Positions 27,166-37,905 of a stretch of DNA of 64,000 nt are shown here, piece by piece (position 1 is the first letter of the stretch; every line of letters begins with the position of its first letter). The DNA is from Polymyxa betae A26-41 (lineage: Eukaryota; Protista; Endomyxa: Phytomyxea), in assembly GCA_003693705.1 (NCBI GenBank), contig RBZT01000578.1, positions 1-64,000 of the forward strand, written 5' to 3'. The position numbers were made by a program, and so were the translations under genes. The notes beneath the pieces were generated by a model. It saw only the letters and a list, made by a program, of their open reading frames with translations. It made no database searches and was not told the origin of the DNA.

Positions 27166-29026
27166 ATGAAATCTGACTGCTCTCAACCTTCTCCTAACCC
27201 CATTCGACGTCGCGAACACGAAGAATCAGAAGGGCGTTACAACACTTTCAGATGGATAGCTGGTGAACAAGGCGAGTCCCATGTTGGGACTGAGCCCAAG
27301 CGTGTTTCGCAATCTGCCATGGTGATTTACCAGCCTTACAAAGCAATCACGTTAACTGAAAGAGATATAGGGCGAGAGGTTGTATTGTGCTCAAGCTCAT
27401 CCATCAGAGCGCTTATCGCAGGAGCCAGTACGGATTCCCGAAGCTATCCGCGCCTATTTAAGTGGCTACTACTACCCATCGCAACGGGTCGGATATCAGA
27501 GCGAATTAGCTGTGTATGCTCCCGATGCGATCCAGCATTGCATGCCATATGGTCTTTCGAACCCAGCACGGGGACAATACCCTCATGCCCGTTTCGGTAG
27601 TGCTCATTCTGATGCTGTGAGCTGGCCGGTTGAATCCGGCGAAACATCATTGCAATATTGGGCAGAGGAATTGCCGTTTGGATTTGCAGTTTCCTCTCCT
27701 GCTCAAGGGCAAGGAGTCGGCTCCATTCAAATGCACGAATCTTGCGGTGAAGCCAACGCTCATTCTTCTCTGGCCCAGAGTTCTGTCACAAGTGAGTTAC
27801 GCTCCAGCGACGACGACCAAGGATCCGCACCGTGCGTATCTGAATGGCCACTTGACACGAAACTTTTCCACAGCAAAAATGACGCAGACCAATTAAATCA
27901 AATACTGCAGACGATTGAACGGAGCCAAGATGCTGACAGTAATTGCTGCTCGAACGAAACGCAACTGGGCGAAGAAGACCGACATGATTTGACAAACGAT
28001 ATCCGATCGCTTCTAGCAGATATGGCAATCACCGCCTCCATCAAAAACCTATTAATTGCAGTTGGCGGTATGCTTCAGCTCGAGTCGGGGCTCAGAATCC
28101 ATGTAACGCCCAGCTTTCTGATTCAACTAGCTGATCACAACCCTGACTTATTCGGCATGGATCAGAATTTGTTATATTTCGACACTTCCCTCAGTCCAGT
28201 TCTCCCCAATCACAACGACCAAGAAATCCCCGATAATTGCGGTACTGATTCGCTTACCATTGACAATGAGCCCCAAGGAAGGGCACTGCACCAAAATGAT
28301 TCCCCAACAGATACAGGCCAACACAGAAAATCGAGATCCCCTTCACCTACTTCGACCCAGAATAACGCATTCTTGCCTGAATTGGCAGATTCTATCCCAT
28401 GTCCGCAATCTAAATGTCCCCTTTCGGAGTCGGCTGAGCAGGGCTCCCCGCCATCGAAATCCCACAACCTCCCAGACGCAAGGCCGGGAGCTCCTGCAGG
28501 GGTTGTGATGACATCATCCACGGACTCAGAGCACACAATGGCATCGCCTATCATTGATGATGGTTCAGATTCCGACAACGAACCAATAATCAACAGCAAG
28601 GCGGAGCGGCGCTCGCGTAATCGCGAGCCAAACTTTTCTAACAGTCAATCATCGAACAGCAATGACATCCAACCCATCTCAATGAACAGCAATGGCAGCG
28701 ATCCCGTCCCACCGAATAGCAATGACAGCGAACATATTTGCTCGACTTGCGGTAAGCAATTCGGACGGCGGTTTGGCCTGCAAATGCATTATCGGACGCA
28801 CTCCGGCGAGAGACCTTACGAATGCCAGGTTTGTCAAAAACGCTTCGCTCATCGATCACATCTTACTCGCCATCGTCGAACCCACACCGGCGAGAGAAAC
28901 CATGTTTGCTATATCTGCGACAAGAGATTCACAGAAAATGGTAGCGTCATCCGACACATTCGACGACGACACCCAGATGTTGATCCAGATAGCGTTCGTC
29001 TGCGAACCAGACGACGAAAAAGTTAA
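27166..29026 (+). CDS. C2H2 zinc-finger transcription factor (3 C-terminal fingers)
   Basis: CSTC..HYRTH-SGERPY-CQVC..HRRTH-TGERNH-CYIC..HIRRRH. A 49-nt intron (27322-27370) joins ORF 27166 to ORF 27380 in frame. Confidence 0.92.
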
Positions 29027-29216: not shown

Positions 29217-31492
29217 TCAACCCCAAATCGAAGCACAACGTTCGTAGTAGTGGCCAATTCTCGATAGTGTTCCAGTCGGGCGTGATGTCAACACGAGCTC
29301 TTCGGATCGGATCTTGGCAAGCAGCGACTTGAGTGCAAGATTAGGATAGACGTTAGTTAAGTCGAGTGGTAAGCCTATGCGATGACGAGAAAGTCAATGT
29401 TCGATCAGCAAGCGTCACTTGTGCCCAGGAGCGTACCAGTTAGGGGAGAGAAAGTTCGGCACGATTGACGTAAGATCTCCAATGACGCACGATCATAAGT
29501 GACGCCATCGGAAGCAACTACAGGATCCCGCATGATATCGCCGGAGATGGGGCAGAAGAACTCTTCGGGCAACGACGGGAACCAATGCGGCGTCGACATC
29601 CCCGTCTGCCAAAGCGTCGACGCTGAATCATCGCGCCAATTGCGCCCGGAATGCACTGGGACAGATGCAGGACGCGGAGGCACCGATTGGGATGTCGACG
29701 ACCAAATTCTGAACACATTGTTCATAAAGAGGATAGAGGACGCGGGAGCCCATTCTTACGTGTGTTGCGGTACCGGAGCGAACAGGCTCGCTGAGGCAGG
29801 AGGCACCGGCGATGGGGTGCGTGATGGCGAGCAATCTGGCGTCGTCCACAAGCCCATGGCACGTCCGTAGGTTGGCAATAGCATAACGTGAGGGTTATGT
29901 GGATGATCCGACGCCAAGGCGAAGATGTCTTCGTGACGCCGCAAGAGTTTCTTAAGGCCACCATACCGGGCTTTAAGCATGGCGGGCAATGCATGATTGT
30001 TGGTGGCGCTGTGCATCAGCGACCCCATCTTACCGACAGTCACGACACTCTCGTTCTCCTGCAGAATCGTGACCATCAGCTGGACCAGATCGCGCTCGTT
30101 GATATCGGGCATATCGAACTCGCCCGCCTGCAAAATCCGTTTCGTCATCTGGCTCAGGTCAGCGTCGAAAACCGATCCGGCGTCAGCCGGGACGGAGATC
30201 ATGGCGATTCGAGCAAGTACGCTCGGCATCAGCTTGGCAAAGAGCATATGCGGATCGCGATTCAAATCCCAGGCGGCGATGGTGCTCAGCGCACGTTTCG
30301 CAGTCTCCGTCAGCCGCTCTTTGACAAAGGCGGCGTTCATGCGAGACAGGCCCGCGCCAAGGTTCTGCACGGGATTACGAGGATCGATCACGTTGAATGC
30401 CCAATCGGTGAAGGTATCGTCCGAGGGATTGGCGGTGGCCGGATCGACGGCGTATCGCGATAGCAACGCCTTGCTGATGAGCGGCTTGGCGTTTGAGGGC
30501 CACGAACACGGCTCACCGACAACACTCTCGTAAAGCGGCAACGATGACAGATGAATAGGGCCGAATAAGCCAAACACATGCTGGTTCCAATCAAACTTCG
30601 CCAGGTACTGAAACAACAGCAGCAGGGTGTCAAACGGCGTCGTAATACGTCGATGGAAGGCGTTGAAAATGAAGAGGACCATGGTGCGGATCACATAAGA
30701 TGACAGGAGCCCATTGGTGGCATCCAGGACTTTGGCGTCGTACTGGGCCCAGGCCTTGGTCAGAATAATGGAACGCTTGAAGAGATGGCTCTGATCGAGG
30801 AGTCGATCGACCTCCTCGAATAGGGCACAGGACGCCAGAACATGGGAGGCATTGGCGCTGACGTCAACGGTAATGTCGCGAACCACAACCCGGATCATCT
30901 TGCCGCCATCAGGGGCCGCAACAAGCTCAGCGCTGCGGATGGGAAGAGGAACGTCGGAGTCGTCACGAGTCAGCAGTTTCAGGGCGCGCTGGCCCCAGGC
31001 CTTGTAGTTATTGTGGGTGAAAAACGCGCACAGGTTCACGTTGGAATCGGGCAGGTACGTCTTCAGGGCGAACGATCCGTGCGGGAAGACTTTCGCACCC
31101 AACGACTTCTTGATGACTGCCTCGACCTGGGCCAGTACCTCCGTGCGTTTGGCCTCTGCAGCAGAATTCGGTTGCAGAGCGCGGAGTATGTCGTTGAGCT
31201 GAGCGTTGACCTCGGTGTCCATTGAACATCGCTGATGCTGATCTGATAGAAACAGCTCAGTCTGTGGAAGTTTTGGGGACGGGGCTCGTGATCGAAACGG
31301 AAGCGGCGGCGACGCTTTCAATTCGCCCAATGTAGAAAGACCCTGACAGGAGACACTGCGACCGAACTTGAAGATGGGCGACGATAGGCCCGGGTCGTCC
31401 TGGGCGGCAGGGCGGCCACCAGCATTGCCGCTTCCCAGCGGACGGAATTCCGGTGCCGACAGCTGCAAATCGGAGAACAACGACGCCGACAT
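29217..31492 (-). CDS. PAM2 motif + non-canonical poly(A)-polymerase-like nucleotidyltransferase fold (catalytic DxD replaced by NxN) + PAP/OAS-type substrate domain + LOTUS/OST-HTH + U-box; 3 exons
   Basis: SDLQLSAPEFRP (PAM2). FPHGSFALKTYLPDSNVNL vs family consensus FGSVPLKTYLPDGDIDL. HLFKRSIILTKAW..GLLSSY; NVIDPRNPVQNLG. VTVGKMGSLM..LKARYGGLKKLL (OST-HTH-like). PEEFFCPISGDIMRDPVVASDGVTYDR..SPLTG|LPLDLTNVYPNLALKSLL (U-box). Intron 29759-29709 links the two ORFs in frame. Confidence 0.85.
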
Positions 31493-31648
31493 GGGCGAAC
31501 GGCGCCCCAAACAAATGACACGAAGCCGAACCAAATGCCTAAGCGACAGAGAGCGAGGAGATGAGTTCGGGGAAACCTCGAGCGGTCCGTCACGGATTTC
31601 ATTACATGACTGGATGGAAGAGAACCCGCACTTGACTGAGACCTATTA

Positions 31649-32589
31649 TTAGACCCAATGCAGTCGATATCTATTCTATTACTCTCAATTATCACTTGAT
31701 ATCCGTTCATACACACACCTTACCTCGAGCAAGGGGTAGTACACACACTAACCATACATCCGCCAGTGCTCGTCCATAGCATCAGCCTGCCCGCGTCTTG
31801 CCTTACAATCCGCTGAAATTCTCGGCCTTTGACAAGTACCAGATACGTTCCGATCTCAACTGCGTTCAGTATGGCAAGGTTTGAAAGCACAGCGACAATC
31901 GACAGGGTGTGATAGTAAGCAAGAGCGAGATCAAATTTGTTTTGAAACGTATGTGAAGAGAGTATAAAGAGAACGTAGATCCGCGATGCAAGCAATTCGT
32001 CAATACATTAGTCTAGACATCATGGCGTCTGACAATATAAATTCAAGAGCTACTCCTATATGATAGCAATGCACTTGTACCAGCGACTTCTGGTGATGGT
32101 AGTGGGCTTGGTAAGTCTGATCTTAATCGAGATTGGTAAAACCGCTACGCTCACCATCAAAGACCACTTGCCGGGCATGGATCGTCTTTCGGAATCGTTC
32201 CGAAATTATATGATTCTTGGCTTCGATAGCAACATTTGGAATAGGCATGTAATGGATTCTAACCTATTAATTGAGCACAGATATGAGCTTTACAGAAGGC
32301 AGATACTTACCCGAAAAAGCTGCCAAGCATCCATCGGCATAACGAGACACCCATCATTACACCAATCTGTCGGGCGACGACTAGCCATAGATTCGTCAGC
32401 CAAAAACCAAACCAGTAAGCGAAGCGGCTTACAAGGCGTCGTTACACGAAGCGTCTGCTTCAACTCCTCAAGCTGCTCTTCGTACATCTGCTGCTCGAAC
32501 GCCTCCCACTCCTCATCGGTCATGTCATCCCACTTAGCTCGATCCCGGACGGCACCGGTCTGCCCCGGGGCCGATGTCGTCGTCGACAT
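31649..32589 (-). CDS. Multi-exon hypothetical protein lying between the two LOTUS genes
   Basis: ATG 32589 gives MSTTTSAPGQ...acidic helix...WQLFR| with a GTAAGT donor. Further exon-like segments include ORF 31720-31995, ending in a GTAAGG donor. No family recognised. Confidence 0.45.
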
Positions 32590-33023
32590 TAAACTCCGAT
32601 AACAACTATGAACGGCACAGCGATGATACTGATAAATCACTGCAAGTTTTATACCCAGTAATTACATCTTATCGGGAGTGAAGAGATACTTTCTCTAATA
32701 ACGACTCAACATTTCAAAAGAAATTACAAAGCGATTTTGATGACTTCATGTTGAACCAGACTCCGAACAAAACATTTTTTTTCTTTCTAGTGTAACATTA
32801 CATAGGAGGATCTCAGCACAGGCCATAACAAGTCAGAGATATCAGAGCAGAGAACTCTTAAAATAGAAATCCAGAAAACCCTAACCGGAAGTGGTGCAGG
32901 CCGCGCAACGTATTCGTCTGACATGAGCACGGTCGCGCAACTTTTCCGGGTCATCTCGTAGAGGTGTTTGTTAATGGGGGGCTCCCATAACATTATCGTC
33001 GTGTGTCGGCACACATCATCACC

Positions 33024-36000
33024 ATGCTCTGCATTTCGGAAGATGACTACAGTGATTCCGAGCATGTGCACACGGGAAAGTTCGCAGCGCCCCGTCCTCA
33101 TATCCAGGCTGACCTTTATCGCCTGGGTCGCGAGATTCAGCGCTTTCTGATGGAGGAACCCGGATATTCGCTGAATCTTTGCAAACTTCGGGAGAAATAC
33201 GAATCATTCTATGGAAAGCCTCTTGGTATGTTTTCAGTTAGCAATTGGTTCAAATGGCCGTAGCTAACCGAGTCGTAGATAAACTCGGCTATTCGAAACT
33301 GGTTGATTGTGTGTATGCCTTGCCTGATCCAATTACTACCCGAGTAAGAATTTCCATCCATTGTTCTGTCTTCGTGCTTATCTTCTAACAAAGAACGTTC
33401 GTCCGAATGGCGTCGCGTTACTGTTAATGCGTCCGATGCGCGATTCATGTAAAGCTTTTCAGCGAGATCAATGCCCAAGAGAGCCCGATGAGTGTGATTG
33501 CGAGCATGAGTGTGACCTTTGTGGTTACCCAACACATGGAGCATCTCAATGTGTTGATGAAGGTGCGCCTGATACCAAACCAGTCCAATCCTACACACAT
33601 TGCTGTCTGCGTTCCAAGTGTGTCGGTGACATTCACAATCCAGACATTTATGTTCCAGATGCTGACGATCTTATCCTCGCTGACCTTTCTGTCAACTCGA
33701 ACAGAATCTCAGTTGAGGAGATGCTTAAAGTGCAAGACAGATATCAAACACCGCCAACCTTTACCAATCCTGATCTGGAATGCGTCAACGGTCGCCCGAA
33801 CTTGAGACCAACGCCCCGTGGGCCAGCGCCTCGTAGACCGCGTGTCAATCCGCCCTTGGATGAAAAGCAGCTGAAAATTCGCGCTTTCTATGCTCACTTT
33901 ATCGCCTGGGTGAAGAATCGATATCGCGAATTCCAAGACTGGCCAAGAGACCGCGAAGACTTTTCTTTTGAATGGGAGTCGTACCTGTCTGGAAACCGTG
34001 AGATGCGTCAGACAGTTGTCGCTTTGATTGATTTCTCTCCATCCGCTGCTCTCGTGTACTTATCGGCTGAGATTCACGTTGTCGCCATTGTGAATTTGAC
34101 CGAGCTTGTCTGGAACGCAAGCGCCATTGCAGAATTGCTGGAAATCACTGGTGCCGCCCCACCTCCCTCACGTCGATGGAGTCAGTCGTCGAGCCATTGG
34201 GGTGGTGAAGAACCTCCTGCTGCCAGAGCCCGTAATCCGGCGCCTCGTCCATGGTCGGATCAAGTCGCTGCGCCAGCTGCTTCGGAGCTGCTACCTGGTC
34301 AACAAGCGCCTGTCGCCGAGCAGAAAGTTGTGTTCACGGTTTCAAAAAGCAACAATATCCAGGACCCTCCGGCGTCATCCAAAGTTTGGCGTCCTGACTC
34401 GCCTGAACGATACACGTCTAAGATCCCGATTCCGGCTTCCAATCGCTTCATGGACGATGACGAAGATGATGAGGACAATCAACAGTCCCGCGCTTGGTCT
34501 ACCAGCTGGCGACCAAAAGCTAGCGATTACGGTAACGACAACCAGTGGGATAACAATACTAACGGTCATTACTCAAACGGGACCGGGTATGCCGCTAACG
34601 GCAATCCCGTTACCATTAACGAGGACGAGGATGAAGAAGGCGCTATCAACGAGAATGAAGAGGAGGTTGATTTCAATGAAGAGGATGAACTTATTGCTGA
34701 AGATGACGATGCTATTGTGGATTCGTCTTACGAAATTCAGCACGAATACTACGAAGAAGTTGTCCAGTCAACTCATCAACCGATTCTACACGATGCCACC
34801 AGCCACATGGACAGTATTGCCAATGCCTATGCTTCCGATTCAGCATCTGATGACGAGCTTCCTACCGACAATCAGTTCAAACCACAAACGACTGTACCAA
34901 TGCCTGTTCCGAGTTCTCCGGTCAAGGAGCCGGTTCAAGAGCCACCTCTTTGGAATGAGGCGCGAATTCAGGCCAACGGCGTGAAATCGTCATTCTCGGC
35001 TCTTTTTGGAGATTCTGCTCCGAGTCAACAGCTTCTACCTGAACAGCCGTTCGTCGCCCAACTCGAATTCGGTAAGTTATTTTCGTTTGCTGTTCAAAGC
35101 TGTATTTGTATCTAATTACTCTGCAGAAGAGCCTGATCTGCGTCATGTTGAGGACACACCAACAATTCCCTCTTCTAATATCCAACAGTCCAGCTCCGAC
35201 CAGTGGGGATCGGTTGCTGATGCGCAACCGAATGACGTCACGAAGCCACAGTCAGACATGAAATCAAGTCCGGATTCGACTCCGGTGCTTTCCGCTGCCG
35301 CTACGGAATTCGTCATTTCCAATGCAGAACCCGCCTCTTCAGAATCTAAGCCGAAATTATCGTCATCGGCTCCAGAGTTCATTCTGTCTTCTACTTCGAA
35401 GCCCAGACTATCCCCGTTTGCTTCAGAATTTGTCACGCCAGAATCAGCTGCTGTTGATGAAGAGCCGATCGTCGAATCTGATTCAGGAGCCGAAGATGAT
35501 GGCGATAATCAGCCTCCGTCAATCACTATTGACAACAAGATCGTAGTTGGAGAAGGAATTGGACAAAACTATCGACGTATGAACGATATTGTCTCTCGTG
35601 CTTCTGACTTCGCTTTCCGAGCTGACGTTTCTTCATCTGAAGTGGTTGCTGACTTGAAACGTCTCGGGTTAGCCTCAGGAACTGCACCCAACATGAACTG
35701 GAATACAGACCGTGTCAAAGAAATCGAGTCATCTTTGGACGCCCGCACACCTTGTTTTGAGCAGTCGTCTTCTCAGCAAGTCGTCTCGGATCAGAATGAG
35801 GAATTCCTGAAGAGCCTGTTGTACCAGGCGATTCTTGGAACCAAACCAGCATCCAATGAAGAAATCGATCTTTTCATTCATGAGTGCCTACGTCTGCAAC
35901 ATGCAGGCGTTGATGCAGTTCTTGGTGGTATGAGAAGTCTCTGGGTCGTTTCTCGAACTTCTTCTGCTTCTGGGTCTGGGCTTTTCCAGGCACCATCCAT

Positions 36001-36317
36001 TCGACCTGTCATTGCCAACGAGGCACACTCCTCTAGACCATCAGGTCGGTAGTTTCTTTTGTGTATCTGTTGAGCTCATTTAACATTTTTCAAAAGGACT
36101 CCGTTCTTCCAAAGGTACATCTCGTCTTGCTCCGTCGAACATGAGAAAATTCCTTCAAGAAGCGGGCCTAGAGCAATGGTTAGGAGTTTTTGAAGATCAA
36201 GAGATTGGTTTTGATCTGCTCCCTGAATTGACTGATGGAGACCTCGTCGACCTCGGCATGACCAATCTCCGTGAAAGACAAAGATTTCACGATACTGTCC
36301 GAATTCTGAAATATTAA
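33024..36317 (+). CDS. LOTUS/OST-HTH + CCCH finger + CCHC knuckle + acidic disordered region + three PAM2-like motifs + C-terminal SAM domain; 5 exons
   Basis: LGREIQRFLMEEPGYSLNLCKLREKYESFYGKPL|DKLGYSKLVDCV (LOTUS). C-x7-C-x6-C-x3-H followed by CDLCGYPTHGASQC (C-x2-C-x4-H-x4-C). VLSAAATEFV, KLSSSAPEFI, RLSPFASEFVTP. MRKFLQEAGLEQWLGVFEDQEIGFDLLPELTDGDLVDLGMTNLRERQRF (SAM, exon 36097-36317). Confidence 0.85.
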
Positions 36318-36517: not shown

Positions 36518-37905
36518 CTACAATAGTATTTTATATTTCTCTGCTTGTGGGACATTGTTAATAACCACTCTTCCATCAAAAGCTAGTGTCGCGTAGACCC
36601 AAGGATCTGTAGCCGACCAGCACGACCGATAGACGCTGTCTTCATGGTCTTTTACGATTTCTATGACCTTGTTCTGATTCTCAGCGGTTTCACCAATGCC
36701 AATATTGGTACTTGGAGAAGAAGCGACAGAATATGCATTCCAAAGATAGGCAGTGCAATCAGATGATGCCGTTAACAGCAACTGATCATGGTGCTGAATT
36801 CCATTAAGACGATGTCATTCAGATACAGCCGAGAGCGTACATGGTTATATTCAACATTCCAAATCCAGTGACTATGTCCAAACAGCATCAATGCAGGATA
36901 ATCGGGCCGTCGCAAATCCCAAAATCTAAGGCTGGAATCTTCACCTTTACACAGATTAGAACAACATTATGAAGTGTTCGAAAACGATGGCTCTACCTGC
37001 AGTAACAATCTGATGCGGTTTGTTGGGATTCACATCGAGATCTTTCATTGCAGCTGGATGTGCTGCCGATATCTTTAACACACCATCTGATGGATCTCTC
37101 CAGTCCCATACGAAAACTTCATTGTCAGTGGCACCAATAAATCGACTATCGTTATGCGGATCGCCTCGCCCTGTGCGAACGTTGGGCGTCTTTCCGAATA
37201 CGACCGAATCTTTCAAATTCGGCTGCGAGTTGTTGCCGTCGATTCTCCAGTAACGCAGCGAATTCGAATCAATGGTCACGATCGCATCTGGATGGAATAT
37301 GTTAACAACTCAATATCAACATCGAATAAGCAAGTGTTAACCATGGCGTGTGAAATTTGCATACGAGAATGCAGATGGCAACGGTGGAAGTTGAACAGCG
37401 TCACTGATAGATTCAGGATTGGGAATTTGAACATTATCATCGTCTAAACTTGCTCCAAAGGAGATCGTTGCTAATGAGACCGTCGCGTTAGAAACCGGTT
37501 TATTCGGTGCACTTTTCGTCACCAGAATCGACCTACTACCCGTCAGTATCAAAATTTCGACATTCAGCAGCTTGTACTGACTCTGGTTTAGACCGAAAAC
37601 TATTCAAGGCCCAGATATGAGTGCTGGATTGATGCTTAACGGGATGCTGATGGACATGCATTGTATCATCACTAAATGTATATAGCTGTATAGATTGACC
37701 AGCAGCAATAGGTGCACAAGCGAACATATGAAGGGTTGGATCTATTTCATTAACAGGCACAGCACATCTATCAACAATCGTCAAGAGAATTTGGACGGCA
37801 GACGCCTATCACCTACAAGGCTCTGGACGGTGCGTCCAGGCTGAACGTCGCTGCTCTGGTGGCGGCTGTATCGGTGACAGTCACCGACGTCCTGCCTTGT
37901 GTCAT
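36518..37905 (-). CDS. EIPR1: WD40 protein, EARP/GARP-interacting protein EIPR1 (TSSC1)
   Basis: DLDVNPNKPHQIVTAG, FWDLR..GHSHWIWNV.YN, and the diagnostic C-terminus HEDSVY..WSATDPWVYATLAFDGRVVINNVPQAEKYKILL*. Confidence 0.9.

Follow-up and report, generated by a model that had tools for sequence, protein, structure and literature searches.

The window analyzed here covers the initial 64 kb of contig C685, which belongs to a 27.09-Mb eukaryotic assembly of 1,001 contigs. It contains two divergently oriented genes, A and B, whose start codons lie ~1.5 kb apart with one small gene between them. The closest named proteins to A and B come from Plasmodiophora brassicae and Spongospora subterranea, which marks the genome as plasmodiophorid. 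Gene A (29217-31492, minus strand) has three exons (31492-29760, 29708-29437 and 29374-29217) and codes for 720 amino acids. Gene B (33024-36317, plus strand) has five exons (33024-33225, 33279-33343, 33394-35071, 35127-36044 and 36097-36317) and codes for 1,027 amino acids. The middle gene (32123-32589, minus strand) codes for 120 amino acids and contains two coding introns (32381-32432 and 32259-32310) and an intron in its 5' untranslated region (32695-32744). An original prediction, made from the DNA letters, had proposed that A and B form a joint module acting on messenger ribonucleoprotein (mRNP) granules. We describe both genes and find that the interest is carried by gene A; the gene-pair idea adds little.

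The gene models were compared with RNA-derived contigs. Contigs from three runs in two studies were spliced at both introns of A, at introns 1-3 of B and at those of the middle gene. The fourth intron of B was placed from the reading frame and orthologues only. A, the middle gene and B appeared as three separate transcripts, and these contigs and gene models confirm the predicted arrangement of two real divergent genes around a small one. Transcripts start near 32879 for the middle gene and near 32966 for B, ~90 bp apart. The middle gene, rather than A, forms the head-to-head pair with B, and A follows the middle gene downstream, also on the minus strand; A and B do not share a head-to-head promoter. 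Both were present in the same three RNA assemblies, for which contig depth indicates neither expression level nor co-regulation. The organism was absent from the raw reads of run X7. Database searches with A and B were performed exon by exon or through the identifiers of full-length orthologues, and the joined models were used in local scripts only.

Gene A joins a nucleotidyltransferase (NTase) domain to a winged helix and a U-box. Its orthologues P0001 and P0002 are 62% and 51% identical to it. Residues 91-430 (30203-31222, minus strand) are predicted to form an NTase fold of the terminal nucleotidyltransferase (TENT)/PAP-OAS1 type. An AlphaFold model of the NTase core and winged helix scored well (predicted local distance difference test, pLDDT, 94.7; predicted TM score, pTM, 0.91) and packed the two domains together. 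In structure comparisons, the NTase model matched GLD-2 best (Z 23.8, root-mean-square deviation (rmsd) 2.8, 277 aligned), followed by TUT1, CutA and TUT7, and it contained both the pol-beta-type palm and the PAP/OAS1 helical domain. A keeps the GS motif as well as the basic helix lining the nucleotide pocket. The catalytic triad reads N151, N153 and D210, the DxD motif having become NxN, and the three acidic residues that would bind metal are not all present. Judged by the pol-beta mechanism, catalysis has therefore very probably been lost.

The U-box of A (residues 624-693; 29301-29572, minus strand) is split by intron 2 and matches PF04564 with an E value of 7.8e-12 and 45.6 bits against a cut-off of 21.4. 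The fold, the N-N-D triad and this match bear out the original description of A as a U-box protein with a dead NTase. U-boxes contact their E2 enzymes through an Ile or Leu in loop 1, a Trp in the helix and a Pro in loop 2. A keeps the Ile and the Pro and has Leu at the Trp position. A also contains one PAM2-like motif (residues 7-19; 31436-31474, minus strand), which occupies the same N-terminal place in P0001 and P0002 and scores under the Pfam PAM2 cut-off.

The winged helix (residues 463-541; 29870-30106, minus strand) is the best conserved part of A, with 86-90% identity to P0001 and P0002. Identity is 48-60% (P0002/P0001) in the dead NTase domain and 77-79% in the U-box. The modeled elements follow the order helix-strand-helix-helix-helix-strand-strand, and the extra helix before helix 3 corresponds to LOTUS topology. 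Superposition on the Tejas LOTUS domain gave a Z score of 8.8 and an rmsd of 2.6 over 74 of 75 residues. Scores for the Tejas, TDRD5, TDRD7, MARF1 and Egalitarian domains spanned Z 7.4-8.8, and PadR and forkhead domains tied with them. Among 23 family members, 13 matched the Pfam family WH_Egal (PF23713; best E 1.1e-4) and 10 matched DUF7725 (best E 0.01); these matches were below cut-off, and the sequence of A in the window had none. No member of the 23 matched OST-HTH (PF12872), and a profile of the domain found chance matches only among the sequences of solved structures. Because LOTUS structures score no better than other winged helices and the best Pfam family is WH_Egal, we call the modeled domain LOTUS-like rather than a proven LOTUS domain, its family not being pinned down. 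A short helix follows the winged helix in the model and is not conserved across the A family. In the ESM Atlas, the best look-alikes of this region (29870-30133, minus strand) were clusters of small viral proteins of 100-125 amino acids (score 0.89-0.91; TM 0.69). It also matched the fold of I73R from African swine fever virus (Z 8.3); we note both likenesses as leads only.

We placed A among its relatives. The closest named sequences to its core are plant At3g51620-like proteins, with 30-37% identity over ~55-60% of the query. Fusions of an NTase with a winged helix are widespread; A's winged helix occurred at 49 metagenome loci, many of them with an NTase upstream. Many of these winged-helix relatives keep the D-D-D triad and have no U-box, and four such active relatives carry a canonical PAM2 motif near the C-terminus. 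The U-box proteins include two P. brassicae paralogues, a protein from the vampyrellid Leptophrys vorax and other relatives. All of them lack the second catalytic aspartate, which is replaced by Asn in nearly every member and by His in one. In a tree built from the NTase core alone, a branch with 100/98 support, or 92/93 when long branches are included, separates the U-box proteins from the other sequences. From these sequence comparisons, we conclude that the gain of the U-box and the loss of the second aspartate map to one branch, descending from a predicted active winged-helix TENT ancestor.

Several metagenome loci of the A family carry an extra N-terminal PX domain. PX, NTase and an A-type winged helix occur in one protein at L033:584-5359, L042:125-4381, L057:6155-10783, L058:20-4225 and L065:7463-10705, some with intact and some with dead triads. 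These proteins could possibly represent a membrane-anchored RNA-tailing family, and our literature search found no paper on this architecture.

The A family has two copies per plasmodiophorid genome. The second copy here (G000:C344:16242-17958; L002, L003 and L008) is orthologous to P. brassicae P0010 and has a dead N-N-E triad, and we found no DDD member of the subfamily in this genome. The presence of two dead paralogues (NND and NNE) with no DDD member found would suit an NTase domain that serves purely as a protein-interaction platform, for example by dimerizing with the dead paralogue or by activating another enzyme. The U-box would then control turnover of the complex, and RNA ends would not be bound. 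The fold matches include NF90-NF45 and Utp22, consistent with this proposal, but the retained GS motif and basic nucleotide-pocket helix fit a domain that still binds a ligand. We regard a pure platform as distinctly unlikely.

Gene B has a much narrower distribution. The only orthologues found were P0084 from Spongospora and P0085 from P. brassicae, along with fragments, and a metagenome scan for B found nothing. The protein begins with a minimal LOTUS domain (residues 27-101; 33102-33429, plus strand; exons 1-3) that is 83% and 69% identical to those of the orthologues. In P0084 this domain matches OST-HTH (PF12872) with an E value of 9e-5 and 22.7 bits, slightly short of the 23.8 cut-off, and relatives match at E 1e-4 to 7e-4. 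A profile of B searched against 1.8 billion sequences retrieved multi-LOTUS proteins reciprocally, and the G-h-x-p-h motif is present as GYSKL. On this profile evidence, we assign the N-terminal domain of B to LOTUS; the ESM Atlas returned no match for it. The original prediction of LOTUS domains in both proteins thus stands for B and is reduced in A to a LOTUS-like winged helix.

The LOTUS domain of B abuts a CCCH finger that runs straight into a CCHC knuckle (33445-33555, plus strand), leaving no room for a C-terminal extension helix. The CCCH part matches those of MBNL1 and CPSF30 (E 0.005-0.01), and the zinc ligands are invariant. Two conserved regions follow (33583-34152), a Cys/His-rich stretch and a domain of ~100 amino acids, neither with a Pfam match. 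The low-complexity region after them (34162-35761) is 15-16% identical to the orthologues and has a net charge of -57 here versus +15 and +3 there. A conserved region of 63 amino acids (35783-35971; 54-56% identity; no Pfam match) precedes a C-terminal SAM domain (36135-36314; PF00536, E 8.6e-8). The finger matches, the low-complexity region and the SAM match agree with the composition originally predicted for B.

Three PAM2-like motifs lie in the low-complexity region of B (35282-35440, plus strand). The expected number is 0.14, and none of 2,000 shuffles reached three. Each orthologue has two such motifs (P 0.004 and 0.007). All motifs of B score under the Pfam PAM2 cut-off. The motifs of A and B resemble L-x-x-x-A-x-x-F-x-P, are conserved and sit in disordered context. 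PAM2-like motifs in both proteins had been predicted, and with one in A and three in B, conserved in orthologues although below the Pfam cut-off, we retain that assignment.

Other genes share parts of B. At least two further LOTUS genes related to its N-terminus are present in this genome (G000:C630:22181-22342, L014; G000:C620:42999-43223, L015), the first of which has the same CCCH-CCHC pair, and the genome has at least five LOTUS-like genes overall. The ~100-amino-acid domain recurs at G000:C708:18864-19199 (L005) with 30-35% identity and without a LOTUS domain in the same exon. A fused CCCH-CCHC finger of this kind is also found in P0122, a protein that we take to resemble a DIRS/Ngaro retroelement gag protein.

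We compared gene order around A and B with that in P. brassicae, the only other genome in which adjacency could be properly assessed. Searches for genomic contigs of Spongospora returned none. The P. brassicae orthologues lie on the same strand of CP145410.1 at ~1.553-1.555 and 1.636-1.639 Mb, ~81 kb apart. Their accessions are 40 apart, corresponding to ~40 genes, and 36 apart in a second assembly. No B-like gene occurred at any of the 49 metagenome loci that carry the winged helix of A, although many of these loci are short; longer contigs with A-like genes had no B-like neighbor, and a distant B-like gene had no A-like gene beside it. A pair conserved by synteny was therefore rejected. Loss of adjacency was one of the refuting outcomes named with the original prediction, and P. 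brassicae, the one genome able to test it, shows this outcome.

Gene order is otherwise scrambled relative to P. brassicae. The only shared neighborhood is that of B with an EIPR1-like WD40 gene (36518-37800, minus strand), which lies tail-to-tail with B in both genomes and is the only conserved neighbor. Ost5 and KTI12, neighbors of A in P. brassicae, are on another contig here. One inversion could connect the two arrangements as far as strand and order go, but the ferredoxin gene that it predicts beside Ost5 was not seen within ~1.3 kb, so more rearrangements have occurred. The middle gene has no orthologue near the A or B orthologues in P. brassicae. Its protein has an acidic N-terminal part followed by one mildly hydrophobic stretch and matches no Pfam family, and a likeness to Mim2 is unsupported. 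A three-finger C2H2 zinc-finger gene (27380-29026, plus strand), convergent with A, is ordinary.

The original prediction had joined A and B into a dedicated module, a condensate scaffold with a tail-sensing E3 ubiquitin ligase, held together by selection. Both proteins contain winged-helix and PAM2-like parts, both are expressed in the same three samples, and their P. brassicae orthologues share a chromosome. Finding two of at least five LOTUS-like genes within two gene positions has a probability of ~0.4%, a post-hoc estimate that assumes ~10,000 genes. Against such a module, the genes are not adjacent in P. brassicae, they have no shared promoter, the A family is far wider than that of B, and their winged helices belong to different subtypes. 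We consider a dedicated module very unlikely. The adjacency is probably due to chance through local shuffling of gene order; an ancestral adjacency that was broken in P. brassicae would be compatible with the same maps.

We favor the interpretation that A and B are two independent RNA regulators linked to the poly(A)-binding protein (PABP), A being a pseudo-enzyme E3, and put its probability at roughly 0.6. The genome encodes a PABP with an MLLE domain, on contig C460. By analogy, A would most likely be a PABP-tethered, RNA-binding E3 that works like MKRN1. Its PAM2 motif would dock on the MLLE domain, and the winged helix and dead NTase cleft would hold RNA or an RNA 3' end without extending it. 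The U-box would recruit an E2, and the targets of ubiquitination would be PABP, ribosomal proteins, further mRNP proteins or A itself. B may be a multivalent plasmodiophorid scaffold whose LOTUS domain and zinc fingers bind RNA, whose PAM2 motifs bind PABP and whose SAM domain may oligomerize. Like many PAM2 proteins, the two may encounter each other on mRNA coated with PABP, and nothing points to a dedicated pair. A PABP-linked RNA or ubiquitin role for each protein is a reasonable part of the original prediction to keep.

A more specific version is conceivable though doubtful. Here A would define a class of E3 in which a retired tailing site reads the state of the mRNA 3' end, its tail length or last nucleotides, beside PABP and relays it to ubiquitination. 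A tail writer could have been replaced by a reader in one evolutionary step, with B as one of its scaffolds.

Several observations weigh against our favored interpretation of two PABP-linked regulators. The loss of catalysis and the gain of the U-box form a single joint event, which provides no independent statistical correlation, and catalysis was also lost in other lineages that acquired no U-box. Most members of the U-box clade other than A, P0001 and P0002 lack PAM2, so PABP tethering is not general. The U-box of A has Leu where most U-boxes, including those of P0003 and P0005, have Trp. Finally, the adjacency comparison depends on one other genome, in which the A and B orthologues share a chromosome.

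The nearest characterized relatives of A suggest another possible role. At3g51620 is NTP6; NTP6 and NTP7 cytidylate pre-miRNAs, and NTP8 is found in P-bodies (PMC13030794). Activity on pre-miRNA hairpins and location in P-bodies would suit an E3 that senses RNA or nucleotides for antiviral or silencing defense, its U-box being activated once the OAS/TENT-like dead cleft and winged helix detect RNA that is structured or foreign. Egalitarian, which has related winged helices, is a stem-loop-binding protein (PMC13186709). The NTase and winged helix pack together in the model, and the latter bears a resemblance to clusters of small viral proteins. That resemblance is a weak feature or fold match only, and the family shows neither a defense-type expansion nor fast evolution, given its two copies per genome and highly conserved winged helix. 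A defense function is therefore unlikely in our view.

Our literature search, which missed most subscription papers, found no paper on a protein with an NTase, a winged helix and a U-box, and none on the architecture of B. OST-HTH/LOTUS fusions to CCCH, U-box and RING domains have been described, among them an Aureococcus protein that carries OST-HTH together with a U-box and CCCH, and a ubiquitin role in granule assembly was proposed (PMC2848206). The supplement of that paper contained no fusion of OST-HTH to a nucleotidyltransferase or SAM domain. The original claim that neither full architecture had been described thus holds as far as we searched, with the qualification that LOTUS-U-box and LOTUS-CCCH fusions were already known. 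The architecture of A, which resembles a tailing enzyme that has lost catalytic residues and gained a U-box and which is common to related protists, is apparently undescribed. The family offers a natural before-and-after pair, an active NTase with a winged helix and a dead NTase with a winged helix and U-box. This pair makes it testable whether an RNA-tailing site was reused as an RNA sensor for ubiquitination. A also exposes a wide protist family, of which we found no description, that is related to the little-studied plant NTP2/6/7/8 enzymes and carries, outside the germ-granule proteins of animals, a strongly conserved winged helix.

We compared A and B to known systems. NF45/NF90, Utp22 and MiD49, which are not known to have polymerase activity, share the NTase fold with A as fold matches; in its core A is closer to active TENTs, and no protein of this set has a U-box. 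The plant NTP2/6/7/8 clade (At3g51620-like; PF26180) resembles A in its TENT fold and is closest to it in named core sequence, but it keeps D-D-D where A has N-N-D and lacks both winged helix and U-box. Egalitarian Egl domains (PF23713) and plant DUF7725 are the best Pfam families for A's winged helix, and an Egl structure matched it with Z 7.8. Egl domains closely resemble LOTUS (PMC13186709), and in Egalitarian they are paired with an exonuclease-like domain. B shares its LOTUS domain, by profile, with Oskar, TDRD5/7 and MARF1. The DEAD-box helicase link originally drawn from these proteins applies to extended LOTUS domains, whose C-terminal extension binds and stimulates Vasa (PMC5458760); B has no such extension, and for it the link is unsupported. 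PAM2 brings MKRN1 to PABP, and the enzyme ubiquitinates PABPC1 and RPS10 (PMC6805484). MKRN1 and MKRN3 combine PAM2, an RNA-binding module and a RING-type E3, as predicted for A. The likeness is a functional analogy only, the MKRN proteins using CCCH fingers with a RING domain and A using a dead NTase with a winged helix and U-box.

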